Shown here one piece after another: positions 14,541-28,004 of a DNA stretch of 64,000 nt. Origin of the DNA: Paramoeba atlantica (Eukaryota; Protista; Discosea); assembly GCA_977017575.1 (NCBI GenBank), contig CDRNVI010000040.1:496001-560000 (forward strand), given 5' to 3'. The notes under the pieces were generated by a model. That model did not search any database, was not told where the DNA came from, and saw only the letters and a program-made list of their open reading frames with translations. The first letter of the stretch is position 1; each line of letters begins with the position of its first letter. Both the position numbers and the translations under genes were made by a program.

Positions 14541-14920
14541 AATGCACAATAGCATAAAGCAACTGTGAGATCAGCTAAAACTATCCAGGATTATCCGTAA
14601 ATAAAATGCAATAGAGCGTAGAAATCATGGAAAATTAAAGATGAATGAGATGAAAAGTTTCAGCAAAGCGAAACATGTTATTGATGTTGATTACATGTGA
14701 AGGTTTCGATACCTATTACTCGTAGTTCCACTATCCGAACTCGACTAAAAGAAGAACTATATAAAACTGCGATTGAAACGTGTTTACGCCATTCGATATA
14801 CCAATGGAGGGCATTATATTTTTATAGCATGTTTAGTTAGGTTTTTTCATCGAATCTATAACGTTGCCTTTGTTTTTTCCTTTTGCGAAAAATGTTATAG
14901 AAAAAATACTTTTCTAATTA

Positions 14921-15330
14921 CGGTGGTTGTATAACTACAGCTCTACCCTCGATTATTGCAAAAAACGTGAACAAAAACAGTGAAAATATAAAGAGAAACA
15001 CAGTAATATAACAAAAAAAAGATGTAAAATGGGGCTCCGGTGGTCCAAAATTGAAAAAAATGGGGGGCCTAGGGGGGGACCCAGGGGGGGCGGCATACGT
15101 CAAGAAATTCTTTTCGAATTTTTTGCTTTTCAAAATCGAGCGCAGGGAAGTGGTACATGTAGAGTACGCCGCGGCGATATTTTCCATCCCCCCCTGGGGT
15201 ACCCCCCCTGGTACGCGCAGGAGGGGTTCGACAAGGCCAAAATTTCCGAAATTTTTGGGACGATCCAAAAAAAAGCAACAATATTATTTTTCCAAAATCG
15301 ACTCCTAAAACGTATTTTGAGAGTTTGGGC
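14921..15330 (+). repeat. dispersed ~400-bp repeat, copy 1
   Basis: Shares ctctaccctcgattattg...aaaacagtgaaaatata...ggggctccggtggtccaaaa...ggggg and later gcgcagggaagtggta and tatttttccaaaatcg with the copies at 19425-20295 and 21176-21406. Confidence 0.9.
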
Positions 15331-15497
15331 CCTCAGCTACCATTCTACGACGTTTTTTTGACAGATTCGCTTCCTGCCCCGACTGGTAAGGCATCCAAAA
15401 CTACCCAAACTCGGGTTAAAATTTCGCAATTTTCGCCTAAAACTCGAGCTTTTTCACCCAAAAAAAATGATTATTCATGATCTTTTGGAAATTTTTC

Positions 15498-19257: not shown

Positions 19258-19424
19258 GCGACTAGGCTAGTCACACTCCTGGCGAAAATGAAGGATCCCT
19301 GGCATGCCCTTCATCGACCATATCCCCCCTTTTTTTGAGATTTTCTCACCCTCCTCGATCCACCCTACCCCGAACAGCATAGAGAAGAAAGAGGTTGTGA
19401 ACAACCACCGCAATATAATACAAT

Positions 19425-20295
19425 TGCGGTGGTTGTAAAACTACCGCTCTACCCTCGATTATTGAAAAAGTGAACAAAAAACAGTGAAAATATAAAGAGG
19501 AACACAGTAATATAATAGAAGAAAAAAATATAAAAGGGGGCTCCGGTGGTCCAAAACTGAAAAAAAAAATTAAAAAAAATGGGGGGTCTAGGGGGGCACC
19601 CGCAACCTTATCTGTCATAGAAACTCGCACCCTTATCTGTCATAAATGCATCCTTATCTGTCATAAATGCACCCTTATCTGTCATAAATGCACCCTTATC
19701 TGTCATAATGCACCCTTATCTGTCATACTGCACCCTTATCTGTCATAATACAATTGAAATAAATGAGCGTCCAAAAGAAGTTCTTGGGAACGCTTCCCCA
19801 CTGAGCCTCCACAGAGATTTTAAAGTATCGCCCTCCGCTCTTGTATGACTCTCCCGACTCTGAGAATTCTCATGAAGCGGTTTCATCTGCTGGTGAAGAA
19901 GCGATTGTTAGCACCTTGGAAGTCGTGCGCAATCTTGCTACAATGGACAGATAAGGGTGCGAGTTTCTATGACAGATAAGGGTGCCGCGTTTATGACAGA
20001 TAAGGGTGCGAGTCGGGGGGGTCCATGGGAGGGGGGGGTCGAGCAAATTTTTTTGAAAAACTTATTTTTCGAAAAAAAAACGCAGAAGTGGTAGCCGGGG
20101 TCTTGGCGCGTATTTTCCACCCCCCTACCCGGGGGTGACCCCCCCCCTCGTATGCGCACGACGGGTCCGGTAAGTTCGGATTTTTTCGGAATTTTTTTTT
20201 TGAAAAAAACTTCAACTTGGCGAAAAAAATGGCAAAAAAAATATTTTTCCAAAATCGTTTCCCCTATTGTATTTTTAAAGTATGGGACCTATAAA
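19425..20295 (+). repeat. dispersed ~400-bp repeat, copy 2, interrupted by foldback element A
   Basis: 19425-19600 matches the 5' half of copy 1; about 20015-20295 matches its 3' half (cgcagaagtggta...tattttccaccccc...gtatgcgcac...tatttttccaaaatcg). Confidence 0.82.
19597..20014. mobile_element. foldback-type element A (inverted arrays of ~20-25-bp subrepeats)
   Basis: 7 direct copies of core ccttatctgt (19606-19743) and 3 inverted copies acagataagg (19947-20005) around a ~195-bp unique spacer; G6 runs on both sides. Confidence 0.8.
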
Positions 20296-21175
20296 CCCCT
20301 CGACACGAATAAAGCACCCCCCTTTATTTTTTGCGTGCGGGGACCCATGGGGGTTGCATGTCATACCACAATAGTAGAACTGCCATCTTTTCATTTGTTC
20401 TCTCACGCACTATCCACACGAAAGCGGGGGGCATTTGTGTAGTACAGCGTACTAATTGAGCATCGTACCCCGTTGGAGCACAAAGTAGTAATATGACCCA
20501 TGCTGTGCACTGAGCAATGTATGAGACCCATGAAAATCCCATTGGTAGTCCTCATTTCGAATATTCTTCCGCAACATCTAGTGGAAAATATTTGCCCACT
20601 AAGCTTGGAATCCTAATTTAATGAAATCAATGTCTGAGGTCTGCGGTGAGGAAGCTTCCATTCGGAAAACAAGAAAGAACATACAATAAACAATCTCTTC
20701 CAAAAGGAGAAAATTGACTCCTGGTGGAGGCGCGCACATCTCCTTTACAGGACTTGCATCTACTGTATTCCTTGAGCCTCCAGAGCTTTTCCGCACCTCG
20801 AAATACCTCAGAAACACTCTGGAATGTTTGTGCGAATCATATACCTCGTGAAGGACTCCCCATTTTGCCAGCGGTAATAAATTGGATAGCCATTTTTTTA
20901 TCCGTGCTACACCCGGCAGAGTTTGTCAAAGGTGACTGAGACAGAAAGGAGATAAACGTAACGGGGTCACCCAGTGCAAGGAGGCAATCCAATGCCCACT
21001 GCAACCCAAACGCTTTTGTCCAGGCTTCCGCACTTCGTATGCACAGACTACGAGCGACCTCGATAGGATCTAAGATACCTAAAGATGGACGGAGAGGCTC
21101 CAGATGCAATCAATAATTGCTCGCATATGCATGACGTATGAGTGGGTATAAGGGGCCCATTTAACAATGTGACAT

Positions 21176-21406
21176 TGCGGTGGTTGCATAACTGCCGCTC
21201 TACCCTCGATTATTGAAAAACAAGTGAACAAAAACAGTGAAAATATAGAAACACAGTAATATAATAGAAGAAAAAAATATAAAAGGGGGCTCCGGTGGTC
21301 CAAAATTGAATAAACAAATTGAAAAAAATGGGGGGTCCAGGGGGGGGCATACGTCGCGAAATTTTTTTTCGAATTTTTTGCTTTTCGAAATCGAGCGCAG
21401 GGAAGT
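21176..21406 (+). repeat. dispersed ~400-bp repeat, copy 3 (3'-truncated)
   Basis: tgcggtggttgcataactgccgctctaccctcgattattg ... gagcgcagggaagt aligns with 14921-15150. Confidence 0.88.
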
Positions 21407-21569
21407 TTATGGTTTTTTTTGAAAATCATATTCCCTTAATTAGTGTAATTCTTAATTAATGTTTCCACGGTAATTGGAATGTATGACAGTATACATCTTC
21501 GTACCCTCTTCAACACCACATCACTTTCCTAACTTCCGCCTTAGATTCATACGAATTTTCAATTAAATC

Positions 21570-21860
21570 TCAGACGAGTGCTATGTAGGTCGACATGATT
21601 TTAGGGAAAATATCCTCTTGCATCCAACCGGGTCCTGTTACGTGAGCGTAAATCTTCCCCAAATGGCTTCCAATGCTCTTGAGGTCCTTTAAAGTACCTG
21701 AGTTCTCTTCCTTGGTTGACCAGAAAAAGACGGTTGAGGGAAGTGTAAGTTTCTTGGAAGTATAAGGGGAGTGCTGATTCATTGTCTGCAATGAAAATGT
21801 AGGTATAAAGGGAGGGATCACCCTCTAAAATATAAAAGGGGATCACAGTACTATCCAAAT
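21570..21860 (-). pseudogene. possible frameshifted pogo/Tc5-like DDE_1 transposase relic
   Basis: Two overlapping frames give TYIFIADNESALPLYF and IYAHVTGPGWMQEDIFPKIMSTYI, which resemble DDE_1 blocks. No catalytic triad was seen. Confidence 0.25.
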
Positions 21861-21927
21861 TCTTCCGATATGACAATGATATTTTTCTATCTCCCGTATT
21901 ACTTGCTGCGGGTAACACCGAGTACCA

Positions 21928-22016
21928 TGCATACGGTACGCGAGTACGGTACTCGGGTACTCAAGGCCCTAGGTACTCATTTGAGTACCCGAGTACCGTA
22001 CTCGCGAATGTATGCA
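21928..22016. repeat. perfect 26-bp inverted repeat hairpin with outer 7-bp stem
   Basis: cgcgagtacggtactcgggtactcaa (21939-21964) / ttgagtacccgagtaccgtactcgcg (21981-22006), 16-nt loop; outer tgcatac/gtatgca. Confidence 0.92.
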
Positions 22017-22892
22017 AAGGGGTCTTTTTGGGTCCGAAGAATGGTGTGGTTGGGGTCGCATCCCCCACCCAATACGTTTGATAGCCTCGAATACATGCGC
22101 ACGAGTGATTTCCCACACGCAAAAGGCGAACTTAGAGGGGTGACTCCTATCCAGGCGCTTCTAGGCGCTTCCAGTGAACTTCTATGGTGTTCGGACTTGG
22201 TAATTTGAGGATAGCAACGTAAACCCCCCTATGGGGGGACATGGGAGGCACACTTTATTTTTATTTTCTAAAGTCTTGTCCAAGGAAGTGGCAGATTAGG
22301 CCGAGGCTATCGTTCGGTCCCAGTAATAAGGCATTTTGCACTGCGTCAACGAGAGATGAATGTCGTAAATTGTTGTTGTTTTTGTTGATAACAAGAGCGC
22401 CCGCATTACCCTCATGCAAGCGCCGCAAGTACCACTCCGGCTCTCGGGCTCCGCCCGAGTACGGGGACGCAAGGCTCTCCTAGGTCGCTTCACCAGCGTG
22501 TGTGTGTCTGTGCGTGTGATTCAGGCCAGTTGGCTCCGAAGAGCTGTGGCTTCCTACTTCACGCGTAGGTCGCGCTACCGGTTCTCCACGCACAAGCGTG
22601 ATCTTCTAACACGAGAGCATCGAAACCCCCAATCATACAAGAAGACACCGGACTTTCCTCACGGGCGGTCAGGATGGCGGCACATGGGTGAAGGAGGGTG
22701 CGAAGAGGGCGGGGCAGGGGGGCGAATTGAATGGCCAGGAGGCTGACCAAGAGTGGGGGCGAAGAGGGCAGGCCAAGACGAGGAGGGCAGGCGAGGAAGG
22801 CGGCCAGGGGGCGCCGAGGAGAGCGGCGAAGAGCAATGTGTGGGCAGGCTCACCAGTGACAATGAACACTCCATAGTTAGCCTACCATGTGT

Positions 22893-22954
22893 CAAAAAGA
22901 TATAAAACGACTCCGTTGGTCCAAAATTGAAAACAAAAATCAAACAATGGGGGT
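22893..22954 (+). repeat. fragment of the dispersed ~400-bp repeat (copy 4)
   Basis: gatataaaacgactccgttggtccaaaattgaaaacaaaaat...aatgggggtc matches ...ataaaagggggctccggtggtccaaaattgaataaacaaat...aatgggggtc in copy 3. Confidence 0.7.
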
Positions 22955-23166
22955 CGCCACACCTGAGGATGACCGCCCTGGTACATTCTAAAATATTTTA
23001 TGCGGTCGAAACCATGATAAAGTCTTGTAGGCTAAACATTTCCAACAACATGATTACCACATCCTCCAACTGAAGCAAAAAAGATTAAGAAAAAGTAAAA
23101 AGAAAAATTAAGACAAAGGTCCTTGGCGCTTCCAGGCCCACGAATGCACACATTCTCGGAAAATCC

Positions 23167-23920
23167 TTGCGTGCCCCGCGTATTTGCAATTTCCCACAGC
23201 CGAGCAGAAAAGGGATTTCGGCGCTCGAGGCCAATGAAAATGCGCAAATCTCCGGGCGCTTTGCAGTTCCCACGGATAATCCAGATGCTCCTTGCAACGC
23301 TGGGTCGACAGTGTCGATATCATCGATTTCGCTGATCTCCGAACGAGCAGAAAAAGGGTTTCGGCGCTCAAGAACGAAGCTTTCAGAATTAATCGATACG
23401 GCCGGATTATTGCAAAGGGCTTGAATGTTGACACCTCGCGTTTCGCAACTTACGAGGGGAGGCGGTCGCTCAATCTGCCGTATTCTGCCATATTCTGCCT
23501 ATCAGGGGGGATTCCACGTCAAAAACACTGCACCGCGTGGTGGTTATGTTGTGACAATAGAGAGATTCAATGCATATATTGACCGTCATAAGTTTATGCA
23601 TTTTTGCCAGAAAAGCCACGTAACTACATCAAAACTTTTCCGGCTTATGTGGAATGCGGAGTGCTTAACCTACGCGCTGGAGAAAAAAATATTGGTTGAT
23701 CCATCAACTGTCCAATTTGGGGCTAATGAAGACGGAAAATTAGCTTTTGCGCGACCCCCTGTTGAGCAATGTTTTTGTGACTTTGAGGCTCCTTCTCGAA
23801 CGGAAAGGGAAAGCCGCGAGCTAATTAGAACGTAGTATCGGGAAGCGCTAAGGGAATTTCCTATCCCCTCTGCCAAAAAGTCGAAAAAACGAGCGAAGTC
23901 GCCAGGACGGGATCGATAGT
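23167..23920 (+). pseudogene. decayed ORF (frameshifts and an in-frame stop), unknown family
   Basis: Overlapping ORFs in different frames share a repeated peptide (PSRKGISALEANE / TSRKRVSALKNE). Reading through TAG at 23833 gives YREALREFPIPSAKKSKKRAKSPGRDR. A tattctgcc element end interrupts it at 23454-23504. Confidence 0.4.
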
Positions 23921-24068
23921 ATGCCTATGATTAAATAATAATGAATAACCAGTCCATATTTATTTCCACATAATTTATGTATTGCAGAAAGCCAGTGGTT
24001 CTTCAACGAGCCTTATTCCTCTATGTTCCAAGAATCCATTCCTTCTTTTCACTTTCTTTCGTACGAAT

Positions 24069-24799
24069 ATGCCTGACGTCTCTGTACAAACCGAATCAGA
24101 GGAAATTCAGACCGAGCTTGATCTTTTAGAAAAGTACATCATGCAATGGAAGGCAGCGATACAAAAGCCATTGAAACAGTATCGCTTTGTTCGCGGAAAC
24201 ATCACTCTTCTTCAAGGTGACCCGGACGCAATTGATCGCGTCTTACGCGTGTAAATCGTTGTCTGAGCGCGGTTGCGTTCTACGACGATGTGTTGGTATG
24301 TTGTGTTCCGCTTCTTGCCACAGGGGTCGCACAATTGACACCTAATCTCATCACATATCGTGGTGGGTGGCTGGGTGCGGAGCACGTACGAGACGGCTTT
24401 ATTAGCGAAGCCGGCCTGGAACTTCGTTCTGTTGTTGCCTCACATGACGAATTCAATTCGTCTGATCCTGAAGCTGAATGCAAGGCATTCGCTGGTCGTG
24501 TTTGGGCCTACCTCGCAGGCCAGAACATCCGAGTGAGTCGCCGTTTACAGATGAACACTCCACAAGAAAGCGAAACATTGTCTATTATTCCTGTGAGTGT
24601 TCCTTCCCCTTCTTCCCACTTGGCAGATGTCATCCAAGATCCTCTCCAAATTGTCCGCCCCCCTCCACCCATCAATGTAAAAGTGCCGATACAGCCCCCT
24701 ATCGTCATTAATGGAATGTTCCCGAAGAAAAGGGGACGACCCATAGGTCCTCAGGCACCACCGCGCAGCGTGCAGGAAGACAAAAGTCAGAAAGATTAA
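24069..24799 (+). pseudogene. ~242-aa gene split by a 2-bp (GT) duplication; Pro-rich C-terminus with a KKRGRP AT-hook-like motif
   Basis: ATG 24069 frame stops at TAA 24252. Removing one gt from cgcgtgtaaat joins it to the 24290-24799 frame (LRVNRCLSAVAFYDDVLVCC...). Confidence 0.55.
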
Positions 24800-25094
24800 G
24801 TTTGATAATTTCCCCGAGAACTAAGCTAGTAAGGTCAGTGTGAAAGTAAATCTTGACTTTTTGGAAGTGTTAAAATTATTATTGAACTTTGACTACAGTG
24901 TTGAATCCCCGATTTCTGTTTTAATAACATTAGCGAAAGCAATAAACCAAGGCGCCGCGGAGCGGCGCGGAATTTTTTCCGATATACCTGATTTTATTAT
25001 ATTATACCGTATTCTGCCGTGTTCTGCCTATCACCACCGACCGGCCGCCCCCCCTCTACGTTTACACGTCTTCAGCGTCCCTGGCCAATTTTTC

Positions 25095-25203
25095 TTTTTT
25101 AGACTCTTCGTTAAACGCGGTGGTAGTTTTCAACGCGAAGCACGCAGCATGAGTGACTTCTAAGTTGAAAACAACCACCGCGTTTAACGAAGAGCCTAAA
25201 AAA
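25095..25203. mobile_element. ~110-bp hairpin/MITE-like element, copy 2
   Basis: Near-identical to 15498-15606, including the loop gcgaagc(a/g)cgcagcatgagtgacttctaa. Confidence 0.8.
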
Positions 25204-25978
25204 GTATCGCTTATATCGTTCGCGTGCATGGCTTGTTTATTTTAATGGGTATGCTTTGAACAAAGATAATCTTTAGTTAAAGAGTGGCAGTAGTGTACTG
25301 CACAGTTTCGCAATGTATCTTCACGATATTGTAAGTCTTTCTCTTGTTTCTGTACTTTATTCATTGTGTACGAGGGGCATGATTAAACCTGTTTCATACC
25401 TTCTTGAACATTTCACATAGCGCATCTTTCATCTCGTCCACAGCTTCCGCAGCTGCTAATGAGCATGACATCACCGCCGTTCCTCTTCAAACTTCCGTTA
25501 CACTTTTCAGTAATTGATTGAACTCGGTCTGATCTTTTGTCTCCCAAAATATCTGATCCTGGCTTGCTCCCCAAAACATTTCCTTCACACTTCAAACGTT
25601 TCTTGACCATAGAATTAGCACATTCGACAGTGTTTGTATCTACCCCCTCCGGGGTGACCCATTGCTGACGATGATTTACATTTCGCCACTCGTACTTGGA
25701 CCGAAGTTTTAGATTATGACGGGTGTCATCGGTCCAAATTAAGTAAGTAAATTAATGTACAATTCTTGTACAGTAGTATTCCTATTTTGTGCAGGGAAAA
25801 CTACCCGAATATTATTCGGGTAAATATGTGGGACTTCTTTCCCAATTTCTATTGTGGGCAGTTATTGAATAGCTACCCACAACAAAAGTAGTCCCCCATA
25901 TTTTTCGAACAATAAGATCAATAGTGTGACAAATAAACATACAGTACAAACCTGAAGTGTAAGTCTTAATATTAAGTA

Positions 25979-26797
25979 ATGCACTTTCTCTCATTAATGT
26001 GGACAACTATGCTCCCCCTTACCAGAACGTCTATGGAAGCTCTCGAAGAAGCGAACGTTCCTTTCAAAAGGCGTAAATTGGGAAAGGTGGGGTCCTCTGT
26101 TCTTCCTATTGAATATAAATTGACGCGTTTTGTTGCAAATCTTACGAATCTGCGTAAATCTTGGTCTGAGGGCACTGCTGGATGTTCGTGGGAAGAGGTT
26201 GAATGCAGTCAAGATGGACATCTTACTCATATAAACTGGGACTCCATGAAGCTGGGTGGCATTCCGGATTGGAAACAATTGCCATCCACATTACAATATC
26301 TAAATCTTTTTGACAACAAATTAGAAGGACCTGTCACCGGATCTGATATTCCTGAATTTGTTTCGCACTTTCATATCTTTGACAATCGCTTCTTTAGCAA
26401 TTTCTCACTTACCGAACTACCTCATCATATTTTAATTCTGAGCTTAAAAGATAATCGCTTTTATGGTCCACTGGACTTTACCCAGCTTCCAAAAGGCATT
26501 ACGAATATCCGACTATCTAAAAATAATTTTTCTGGGTCCATTGATCTGCAAAATTTGCCATGCAGTCTTCAAGAGCTCGCTCTTCACGATAATTCATTGA
26601 GCGGAGAACTTGATCTTACCAAATTAAGCGATGGTCTGAGGTCACTTTTCCTTAACGGTAACAAGTTCAGCGGAGTTGTAAACCTTGAAAGTTTATCATC
26701 AAGTCTAGTACTTGTCGGTGTGACAGATAATCCATGGCAAATAGAGGAATCTCATCAGTTTAGGCTTGAAAATGGGTCGCATTGGAGGATACATTGA
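25979..26797 (+). CDS. leucine-rich repeat protein (plant-RLK/GP46-like LRRs with a CxWxxVxC N-cap)
   Basis: CSWEEVECSQDG cap; repeats LPSTLQYLNLFDNKLEG, LPKGITNIRLSKNNFSGSIDL, LPCSLQELALHDNSLSGELDL. Confidence 0.88.
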   Translation: MHFLSLMWTTMLPLTRTSMEALEEANVPFKRRKLGKVGSSVLPIEYKLTRFVANLTNLRKSWSEGTAGCSWEEVECSQDGHLTHINWDSMKLGGIPDWKQLPSTLQYLNLFDNKLEGPVTGSDIPEFVSHFHIFDNRFFSNFSLTELPHHILILSLKDNRFYGPLDFTQLPKGITNIRLSKNNFSGSIDLQNLPCSLQELALHDNSLSGELDLTKLSDGLRSLFLNGNKFSGVVNLESLSSSLVLVGVTDNPWQIEESHQFRLENGSHWRIH

Positions 26798-26886
26798 TTC
26801 GTGGTTTTTAATCTTTTACTTTTTTTGATGGTCTTGCACATGTTCAACAACAATAAAGGTATGAGTCCCGTGTATTACATGAAAAC

Positions 26887-27523
26887 ACTGATAATGCATA
26901 ATGCACACTGATAATGCATAAAATTCGCACACTGATAATGCATATAGGCACACTGATAATGCATAAAACTCGCACACTGATAATGCATAGTAGCTCGCAC
27001 GCTGATAATACATAATGCACACTGATAATGCATAATGCATACTGATAATGCATGACGACTATATTCACACAAAGACTGTTTTTTAGGTTTCCCAAATTTT
27101 GTTGGGCTTCGCAAATAGCTTCCTACTAACGTCAGACGTCTTTGTGTTCAAGACGGGTAAACAAGGTCTTGGCTTTATTACGGGTTGGCTATGGTGAAAT
27201 TTTTTGGGCTTCGCAAACTGCTTCCGACTAACGTCAGACGTTTTTGTCTTGCAGACGCGTAAACAAGGTCTTGGCATGCAAATGGTTTTACTACAAATTT
27301 TTGTAAAGGGCCTTTCTTCAATTTTTTCCAAGGGCTCAATCCATTTTCGAAGGGATTGCAAAAATTATGCACTATCAGTGTGCGAGTTTTATGCATTATC
27401 AGTGTGTCTATATGCATTATCAGTGTGCTAACATGCATTATCAGTGTGCCTATATACATTATCAGTGTGCGAGTTCTATGCATTATCAGTGTGTGAGTTT
27501 TATGCATTATCAGTGTGCGAGTG
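26887..27523. mobile_element. foldback-type element B (inverted arrays of 20-25-bp subrepeats)
   Basis: 8 direct copies of core actgataatg (26887-27050; one variant) and 7 inverted copies cattatcagt (27370-27514; one variant). The ~310-bp spacer contains a 70-bp direct duplication (27104-27173 / 27206-27275). Confidence 0.85.
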
Positions 27524-27577
27524 GCTAGTCCTAGGGCTTCCCTGGCTCATGGGCCCGGCTGTCCCCTCCGTGTGTTC

Positions 27578-27688
27578 GGCCTCTCATATTCCCCAAAACA
27601 ACTACCACCTTCTCCCCATTTATCAAGGGTCGCTCGCGCGACCCGCGCTAAATAGGGGGGAAGGTGGTACTTGTGGGATATGGAGGCC
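27578..27688. other. long imperfect stem-loop
   Basis: taccaccttctcccc (27603-27617) pairs with ggggggaaggtggta (27655-27669); inner gggtcgc/gcgaccc; outer ggcctc/gaggcc. Confidence 0.7.
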
Positions 27689-28004
27689 TCTCACAACTCC
27701 GAGGCCTCACCGGGAGCAGGACAGAAGTGCAAGGACTTATTTTCAATGGTTTTTGACTTATGCAATATTCCTTTACTTACACATTATTCCTTGACTTATG
27801 CAATATTCCTTTACTTTGGCCGTAATACTCTACAATATTCCTAGGTACTTGACACCATTAAATAAAACCGAAAATTAGTAAATGTATCAGTACTTAGAGA
27901 ATAGGAGTTAGTTCAAACCCTGGAACTCAATTGCAAACGAAGCAAATTCTAAAATTGTTTAACACAAATTAACATTGTTTCATTTACTTATTGCTTACTC
28001 CTTT

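Follow-up and report, generated by a model that had tools for sequence, protein, structure and literature searches.

Sister families of IS30-type transposons with tandem terminal units in Paramoeba atlantica, and a GATAA-bearing core that probably changed sense by point substitution

A 64,000-nucleotide stretch of the genome of the discosean protist Paramoeba atlantica (GenBank assembly GCA_977017575.1, contig CDRNVI010000040.1, positions 496,001 to 560,000, forward strand; hereafter the window) contains two short foldback elements, A and B, whose ends are tandem arrays of units with the same spacers and with a 10-nt core that carries the word GATAA in opposite senses. Judging by their sequences, A and B are copies of two sister families of a eukaryote-resident transposon with a DDE transposase of the IS30 family. 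The explanation that we consider likely as a whole is that these IS30-type families bear terminal arrays of reiterated inverted repeats (IRs), in which the apparent 'flip' of GATAA came about through point changes passing via a near-palindromic core. The new elements here are the series of units that runs across the families and this explanation of the flip. An earlier note on the same DNA had treated positions 19597-27523 as one object; the strings that it quoted are all present in the window, and the span resolves into two elements with 6.9 kb of other repeats and a leucine-rich repeat (LRR) gene between them.

Elements A and B and their transposase-encoding relatives

In the window the A unit motif has 9 matches and the B unit motif 14, where 0.09 and 0.03 would be expected. 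Across the genome (G000; 45.7 Mb in 248 contigs) there are 501 (A) and 728 (B) matches with at most one mismatch, and reversed-pattern controls give zero for both motifs. The earlier note had proposed looking for such further copies, for a long copy encoding a transposase, and for intermediates or mixed arrays; all of these exist, the long copies in both families and the mixed arrays in two sister families, C and E (see below). The long copies have one open reading frame (ORF) between the arrays, of 362 amino acids in family A (locus L061, C5:184600-187966) and 338 in family B (L062, C28:112600-116200). These ORFs score 252.4 and 253.2 bits against the NCBIfam IS30 equivalog NF033563 (cut-off 80), over model positions 1-266 of 267, and Pfam returns for them only rve and helix-turn-helix (HTH) domains with weak scores. 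In our alignment (A1) D180 and D234 are invariant and E268 nearly so, with 33 residues between D234 and E268; a DDE triad with about 33 residues between the second D and the E is a hallmark of the IS30 family. The two transposases are 58% identical, which, together with the shared termini described below, supports the reading of A and B as related mobile elements with tandem-array ends. A tblastn search of the genome gave 114 matches, and since these fall into distinct identity classes (~100, 67, 58-54 and 44-42%), several families are present.

The host context comprises window genes of RFC-like, LRR and diphthamide-synthase (eukaryote/archaea) type, and the elements are nested in other repeats. 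Five ENA proteins (P0001-P0005) lie at zero or near-zero tree distance from this genome's own proteins, so that their source is apparently this organism or a very close one.

Element A spans 19595-20016 (422 bp) and consists of inverted arrays of 20-25-bp units, seven on the + strand (cores 19606-19743) and three on the - strand (19946-20013), around a piece of gene:

19592..19594, no strand: putative left copy of a 3-bp target-site duplication (TSD), GGG, in a G run, placed by the boundary rule from 11 copies
19595..19748, + strand: 5' terminus (11 nt, GGCACCCGCAA) and seven units with core CCTTATCTGT
19749..19945, + strand: 3'-terminal remnant (the last 66 codons or so) of a family-A IS30-type transposase gene, 96.4% identity over 195 nt
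19946..20016, - strand: 3' array of three long units and the 3' terminus GTGCGAGTCGG (canonical form GTGCGAGTGG[CG])
20017..20019, no strand: putative right copy of the TSD, GGG

The two outer units of the 5' array have long spacers and the others short ones. As the interior, which matches positions 1461-1657 of L061 (the end of the 362-amino-acid ORF), corresponds to the last ~66 codons of the A gene, element A is evidently an internal-deletion derivative from which the rest of the transposase gene was deleted, and is predicted to be non-autonomous. It is inserted in the G run of a ~400-bp host repeat (19422-19594 plus 20017-20340) ending in the G-rich motif GGGGTC.AGGGGGG, of which the window holds an uninterrupted paralogue at 14916-15333 (G run 15071-15078) and a further paralogue at 21174-21343. 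This setting fits a GGG duplication and is uninformative by itself. Ends of other A and B copies (L063, L069, L037) adjoin the same host repeat family, which points to preferential insertion at G runs or else to nesting inside that repeat. A further A-type locus, L064 (G000:C11:1-6500), has two identical 2.9-kb tandem blocks, each of which combines a 10-unit A-type 5' array with the first 23 codons, and no more, of the A transposase gene; a CT/AG dinucleotide-type tract (read as an (LS)n ORF) comes next. The locus is a segmental duplication of a truncated A copy.

Element B spans 26885-27525 (641 bp) and likewise comprises inverted arrays of 20-25-bp units, eight on the + strand (26885-27053) and seven on the - strand (27366-27522):

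26885..27053, + strand: 5' array of eight units whose core is ACTGATAATG, lacking the outermost units and the canonical 5' terminus GGCACCCGCAC
27054..27365, + strand: internal non-coding part with no transposase gene, homologous to the region downstream of the B gene
27366..27525, - strand: 3' array of seven units and the 3' terminus GTGCGAGTGGC

Its interior, with two ~80-bp direct repeats (27095-27173 and 27197-27275), is 84-92% identical to positions 2265-2972 of L062 and also matches L066 and L081. Because the left side is devoid of the canonical terminus, we take element B to be a 5'-truncated, gene-less copy.

Just beyond its 3' end is a ~180-bp module (27543-27720) that forms a hairpin with 20-nt arms (27598-27617 and 27655-27674); full-length A, B and E copies harbor modules 89-93% identical to it, placed between their transposase gene and 3' array. 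The module at 27543-27720 probably belongs to a neighbouring element. Also adjoining B are three units (27756-27816) of a further array family, with 19-bp units and the core AGGAATATTG before CATAAGT, which has 10 units in L071 (3424-3614); its core matches the bulk core of family C at 6/10 positions.

Shared termini, target-site duplications and a common unit frame

Aligned across 11 copies (families A, A2, B and E), the ends show an 11-nt 5' terminus, GGCAC[CA]CGCAC, and a 3' terminus, GTGCGAGTGG[CG], that are conserved across all four families; those of family C are near-identical. Nine of the 11 copies are flanked by a 3-bp TSD (AGC, CTT, ATT, GTC, CAT, GAG, CCC and, twice, GGG). A 2-bp (GG) duplication fits all A copies and fails in B, and a 4-bp one is perfect in only three informative copies; both models were rejected. 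Full elements measure 2.3-2.6 kb, with each end made up of the 11-nt terminus followed by 3 to 35 tandem 20-25-bp units, and with an internal hairpin module.

Within this architecture the A unit reads GCAC, the core CCTTATCTGT and CATAA(A)T, with CATAGAAACTCGCAC as the long-spacer variant, and the B unit reads GCAC, the core ACTGATAATG and CATAAT, with the long spacer CATAAAACTCGCAC. As the earlier note had claimed, the spacers are the same: CATAA(A)TGCAC as the short form and CATA(G)AAACTCGCAC as the long one are common to both elements (identity 10/10 and 14/15), and both right arrays finish in GTGCGAGT, which is part of the conserved 3' terminus. The inner part of the 3' terminus, ACTCGCAC, also closes the long spacer, so that each long unit looks like a copy of the terminus plus the neighbouring site. 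The cores, in turn, match at 8/10 positions as reverse complements and at 4/10 directly, again as had been read; random 10-mers reach a match of at least 8/10 with P = 0.0005. When read along the transposase gene, the units of both families stand as written (+) upstream of it and as their complements downstream. The claim of a same spacer sense and an opposite GATAA sense therefore holds relative to the gene polarity of the long copies, and is a true statement on homologous positions because the gene supplies the polarity that a foldback alone lacks. Homology of whole units in reverse orientation was considered and rejected: once the cores are paired as reverse complements, only 0/4 and 3/10 flanking positions agree, by eye, and the termini anchor the direct frame.

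The satellite-like look of the arrays, and nothing beyond it, might suggest that they are host minisatellites or unrelated foldback DNA lying beside transposase genes, with spacers alike by chance. We regard this as scarcely credible, given that the arrays always come as inverted pairs flanking an IS30-type gene or what remains of one, and that the same 11-nt termini and 3-bp TSDs bound these pairs. Moreover, spacers identical at 10/10 and 14/15 positions, shared termini and 58%-identical transposases cannot be due to chance, and the content of the arrays follows the transposase tree.

Core variants across the families and the origin of the opposite sense

In the transposase tree the array-bearing clade is monophyletic (100/100, with or without bacterial sequences) and splits into A+C (95/95) and a D-group joined to B+E (86/86), with B+E itself supported at 100/99. 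At least six diverged sibling families coexist in the genome. A census of core variants, comprising ~30 loci and whole-genome pattern counts, indicates that the core tracks this tree. Core positions 3-7 are distributed as follows:

Families A and A2: only TTATC
Families B and D: only TGATA
Family C (sister of A): long outer units TTATC, bulk units TTATA, within single arrays
Family E (sister of B): TTATA in long units and TGATA in short units, plus B-type cores, within single arrays

Two units stand apart, namely the outermost 5' unit of the E copy L076 (core CCTTATCACG), which is outside the tabulated range, and a C unit in L070 (core CTTGATCTGG), counted as 'other'. Among the ~30 loci examined no array holds A and B units together, nor do the TTATC and TGATA classes as such co-occur in one array.

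In a single frame and orientation, the cores can be placed in a chain of single steps from A to B: CCTTATCTGT (A), CTTTATCTGT (7 genomic copies), CTTTATCTGG (31 copies), CTTTATATGG (7 copies), CTTTATATTG, CTTTATAATG, CCTTATAATG, CCTGATAATG and ACTGATAATG (B). Since every one of these variants occurs in frame, the path is fully populated. The TTATAA-type cores at its middle are 8/10 self-complementary, and TTATC (positions 3-7) and GATAA (positions 4-8) are each one change away from TTATAA, at the mirror positions 7 and 4, where both changes give the same G:C pair. Families C and E carry both states at these positions within one array, which suggests a weak reading of positions 4 and 7 and an invariant part made up of T3, A5 and T6 along with the frame.

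We accordingly favor an explanation of the 'flipped' core by stepwise point changes via a palindromic intermediate rather than by inversion, because positions 4 and 7 visibly toggle inside single C and E arrays. Under this explanation the opposite GATAA sense would result from substitutions at the mirror positions 4 and 7 of a near-palindromic C-TTATAA-G, by the route TTATC <-> TTATA <-> TGATA, an order of changes that we infer from the series. The frame and termini would have been preserved as the core and the transposase clades diverged in parallel, and new core variants would have spread through the arrays by duplication of units.

The earlier note had instead proposed that the core was inverted within the unit and then re-amplified. 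In its specific form this would be a true micro-inversion between unchanged spacers in the ancestor of one clade, amplified thereafter through both arrays. Such an event would explain why TTATC-class cores are nearer to the reverse complement of TGATA-class cores (7-8/10) than to these cores directly (3-5/10), would require fewer events (an inversion plus two substitutions) than the direct path, and could point to the variant CATTATCTGT, which matches the reverse complement of the B core at 9/10 positions and is present in five copies. However, the required in-frame reverse complement of the B core (CATTATCAGT between GCAC and CATAA) has no exact occurrence in the whole genome; the five in-frame matches with one mismatch are plain variants of A, and the in-frame reverse complement of the A core is likewise found zero times genome-wide. 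Furthermore, the TTATAA-type units from either clade (CTTTATATTG in C, CTTTATAATG and CCTTATAATG in E), which share the same long-spacer frame and are identical at 9/10 positions directly, would have to be convergent at ~4 positions, and the polymorphism of positions 4 and 7 within single arrays is what point substitution predicts. Because the needed intermediate is never seen and the identity of the TTATAA units becomes convergent, with single-step direct intermediates occurring in frame, we consider a micro-inversion improbable.

A second suggestion of the note was a modular array recognized in either orientation. In a weaker form, a core readable from both strands, this is conceivable, the inferred ancestral core being 8/10 self-complementary. 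A functional version would have a quasi-palindromic core in which a GATAA-like half-site became fixed on opposite strands, with the DNA-binding domain reversed relative to the terminus in A/C versus B/D/E. Consistent with it, the consensus [AC]C[AT]GATAA.G is a bottom-strand feature in the terminal units of A and C and a top-strand one in B, D and E, each of the two point changes yields the same G:C pair at positions that mirror one another, and the 8/10 match exceeds the neutral expectation from a palindromic ancestor (P 0.007-0.026). Against it, single arrays of C and E accept either state at positions 7 and 4, the supporting statistic is post hoc, and the half-site itself is a prediction from sequence. 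On balance we think such a mirrored site unlikely, though less so than an inversion.

Several points weigh against the stepwise explanation that we favor. When neutral substitution was simulated from palindromic ancestors, using as many changes as were observed, a match of at least 8/10 arose in only 0.7-2.6% of runs (a post hoc comparison); chance alone is thus uncomfortable as the source of the whole 8/10 match, to which selection for a shared half-site on either strand may contribute. By event count, an inversion plus two substitutions is shorter than the 5-8 substitutions of the direct path. The census takes in its ~30 loci and the pattern counts, not every array. Finally, the rooting depends on a split with 86-95% support, and the placement of the outgroup families G, H and I relative to the bacterial sequences is not settled.

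The more distant families may bear on the origin of the arrays. At 42-44% identity to A, these IS30-type families carry just 2-3 subterminal repeats, 22-32 bp long, at each end (L074, 1347-1436 and 2688-2811; L077, 1347-1434 and 2743-2801; L073, 1209-1262 and 2547-2618), and these ends may represent a stage between the single bacterial IR and the long arrays. In gene sense, the outgroup families H and I show TTATC or TTGTC, then 8 nt, then TGCAC or CGCAAC. A homology of these TTATC and GCAC boxes with those of the array units is possible and only a lead; the H/I repeats give no more than a hint that the A-like sense is the older one, subject to where H and I fall relative to the bacteria.

A bipartite-end model for the arrays

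IS30 and related copy-out/paste-in families have bipartite ends, in which the catalytic domain binds at a terminal site and the N-terminal domain at a subterminal one; an N-terminal IS30 transposase fragment protects bp 9-35 (PMC7780238). By analogy, each array unit could be a reiterated IS30-type IR. The family-invariant 11-nt terminus would be the putative site for the catalytic domain, and the unit (GCAC frame, 10-nt core and CATAA, with core and CATAA at bp 12-27) the putative subterminal site for the N-terminal HTH region. The arrays would then be stacks of putative transposase-binding sites, and we retain in this qualified form the earlier idea that the tandem end units are transposase-binding subrepeats, i.e., as probable binding units. 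Copies that keep arrays but have no gene would have been moved in trans. Such a scheme would account for conserved termini alongside family-specific cores, for array lengths from 3 to 35 units, and for gene-less copies with arrays.

At least six sibling families thus share termini and frame, differ in the 10-nt core, and still include transitional arrays. This series makes it testable how a transposase and its binding site drift into non-cross-reacting families, and also raises the question of whether a palindromic intermediate can let a site change its polarity. Most likely, the specific inverted-core pattern is a matter of ordinary point evolution. A bolder proposition, to which we give little credence at present, is that the sister clades placed the same GATAA-like half-site on opposite strands of a fixed unit, via a TTATAA bridge that survives in C and E, with the polarity of the DNA-binding domain being opposite in A/C and B/D/E. 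Were this true, it would constitute a stepwise natural route to mutually orthogonal sibling transposons with the same termini.

Comparison with known transposons

The nearest bacterial relatives are insertion sequences (ISs) of Verrucomicrobiota, 1.21 kb long and with 46-48% transposase identity, which have single ~25-bp IRs and, in four copies (L092-L095), the 3-bp TSDs ATA, GTT, TCC and CTG. We detected no convincing similarity between these bacterial IRs and the array units. The likeness to bacterial IS30 elements lies in the IS30-equivalog transposase, the positions of its D, D and E residues, the 3-bp TSD and the bipartite logic of the ends. However, whereas the bacterial elements are compact (1-1.3 kb), have single 20-30-bp IRs and reside in prokaryotes, the Paramoeba elements are 2.3-2.6 kb long with an internal hairpin module, have 3-35 tandem IR-like units behind an imperfect 11-nt terminus, and inhabit a eukaryotic nuclear genome with many deletion derivatives and at least six sibling families. 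Among the papers that could be searched, none describes a eukaryotic IS30 lineage, and queries on IS30 in eukaryotes or kinetoplastids gave nothing relevant.

A kinship with Foldback/Galileo, FARE and CACTA elements, which the earlier note had cited for their tandem end subrepeats, is not borne out, the transposase being of the IS30 family and the TSD 3 bp; these are resemblances of shape only. With Foldback/Galileo (P superfamily) and FARE elements the present ones share long inverted terminal arrays of short tandem subrepeats, which make up most of the short copies and are hairpin-prone. Unlike them, they reiterate the element's own terminus-like unit, and have an IS30-type transposase and 3-bp TSD in place of a THAP/P or Mutator-like transposase and 7-9-bp TSD. 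Membership in Foldback/Galileo specifically was rejected in the absence of a P/THAP transposase from the autonomous copies, which encode the IS30 type, and with a TSD of 3 rather than 7 bp. Membership in CACTA (En/Spm) was rejected on the termini (GGCACCCGCAC and GTGCGAGTGG[CG]) and on the Pfam results (rve and HTH only), the likeness in this case being a superficial one of a 3-bp TSD and ends beginning with CAC. Several subterminal transposase-binding motifs per end are also a feature of CACTA (En/Spm) and Ac/Ds, with their subterminal repeats, and of Mu, Tn7 and IS21, with their multiple end-binding sites. All of these have transposases of other families, whereas the motifs described here are strictly tandem, in one orientation per end and in a 20-25-bp frame.

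Other repeats in the window

An Rfam search of the window returned no family. Positions 21925-22005 form a long near-perfect hairpin of GAGTAC/GGTAC-type words (arms ~21940-21965 and 21975-22000) that is unrelated to the A and B units. A ~35-nt inverted repeat around a short loop occupies 25095-25205; it shares a ACAACCACCGC-type word with a hairpin at 19401-19436 and is probably part of another repeat family.

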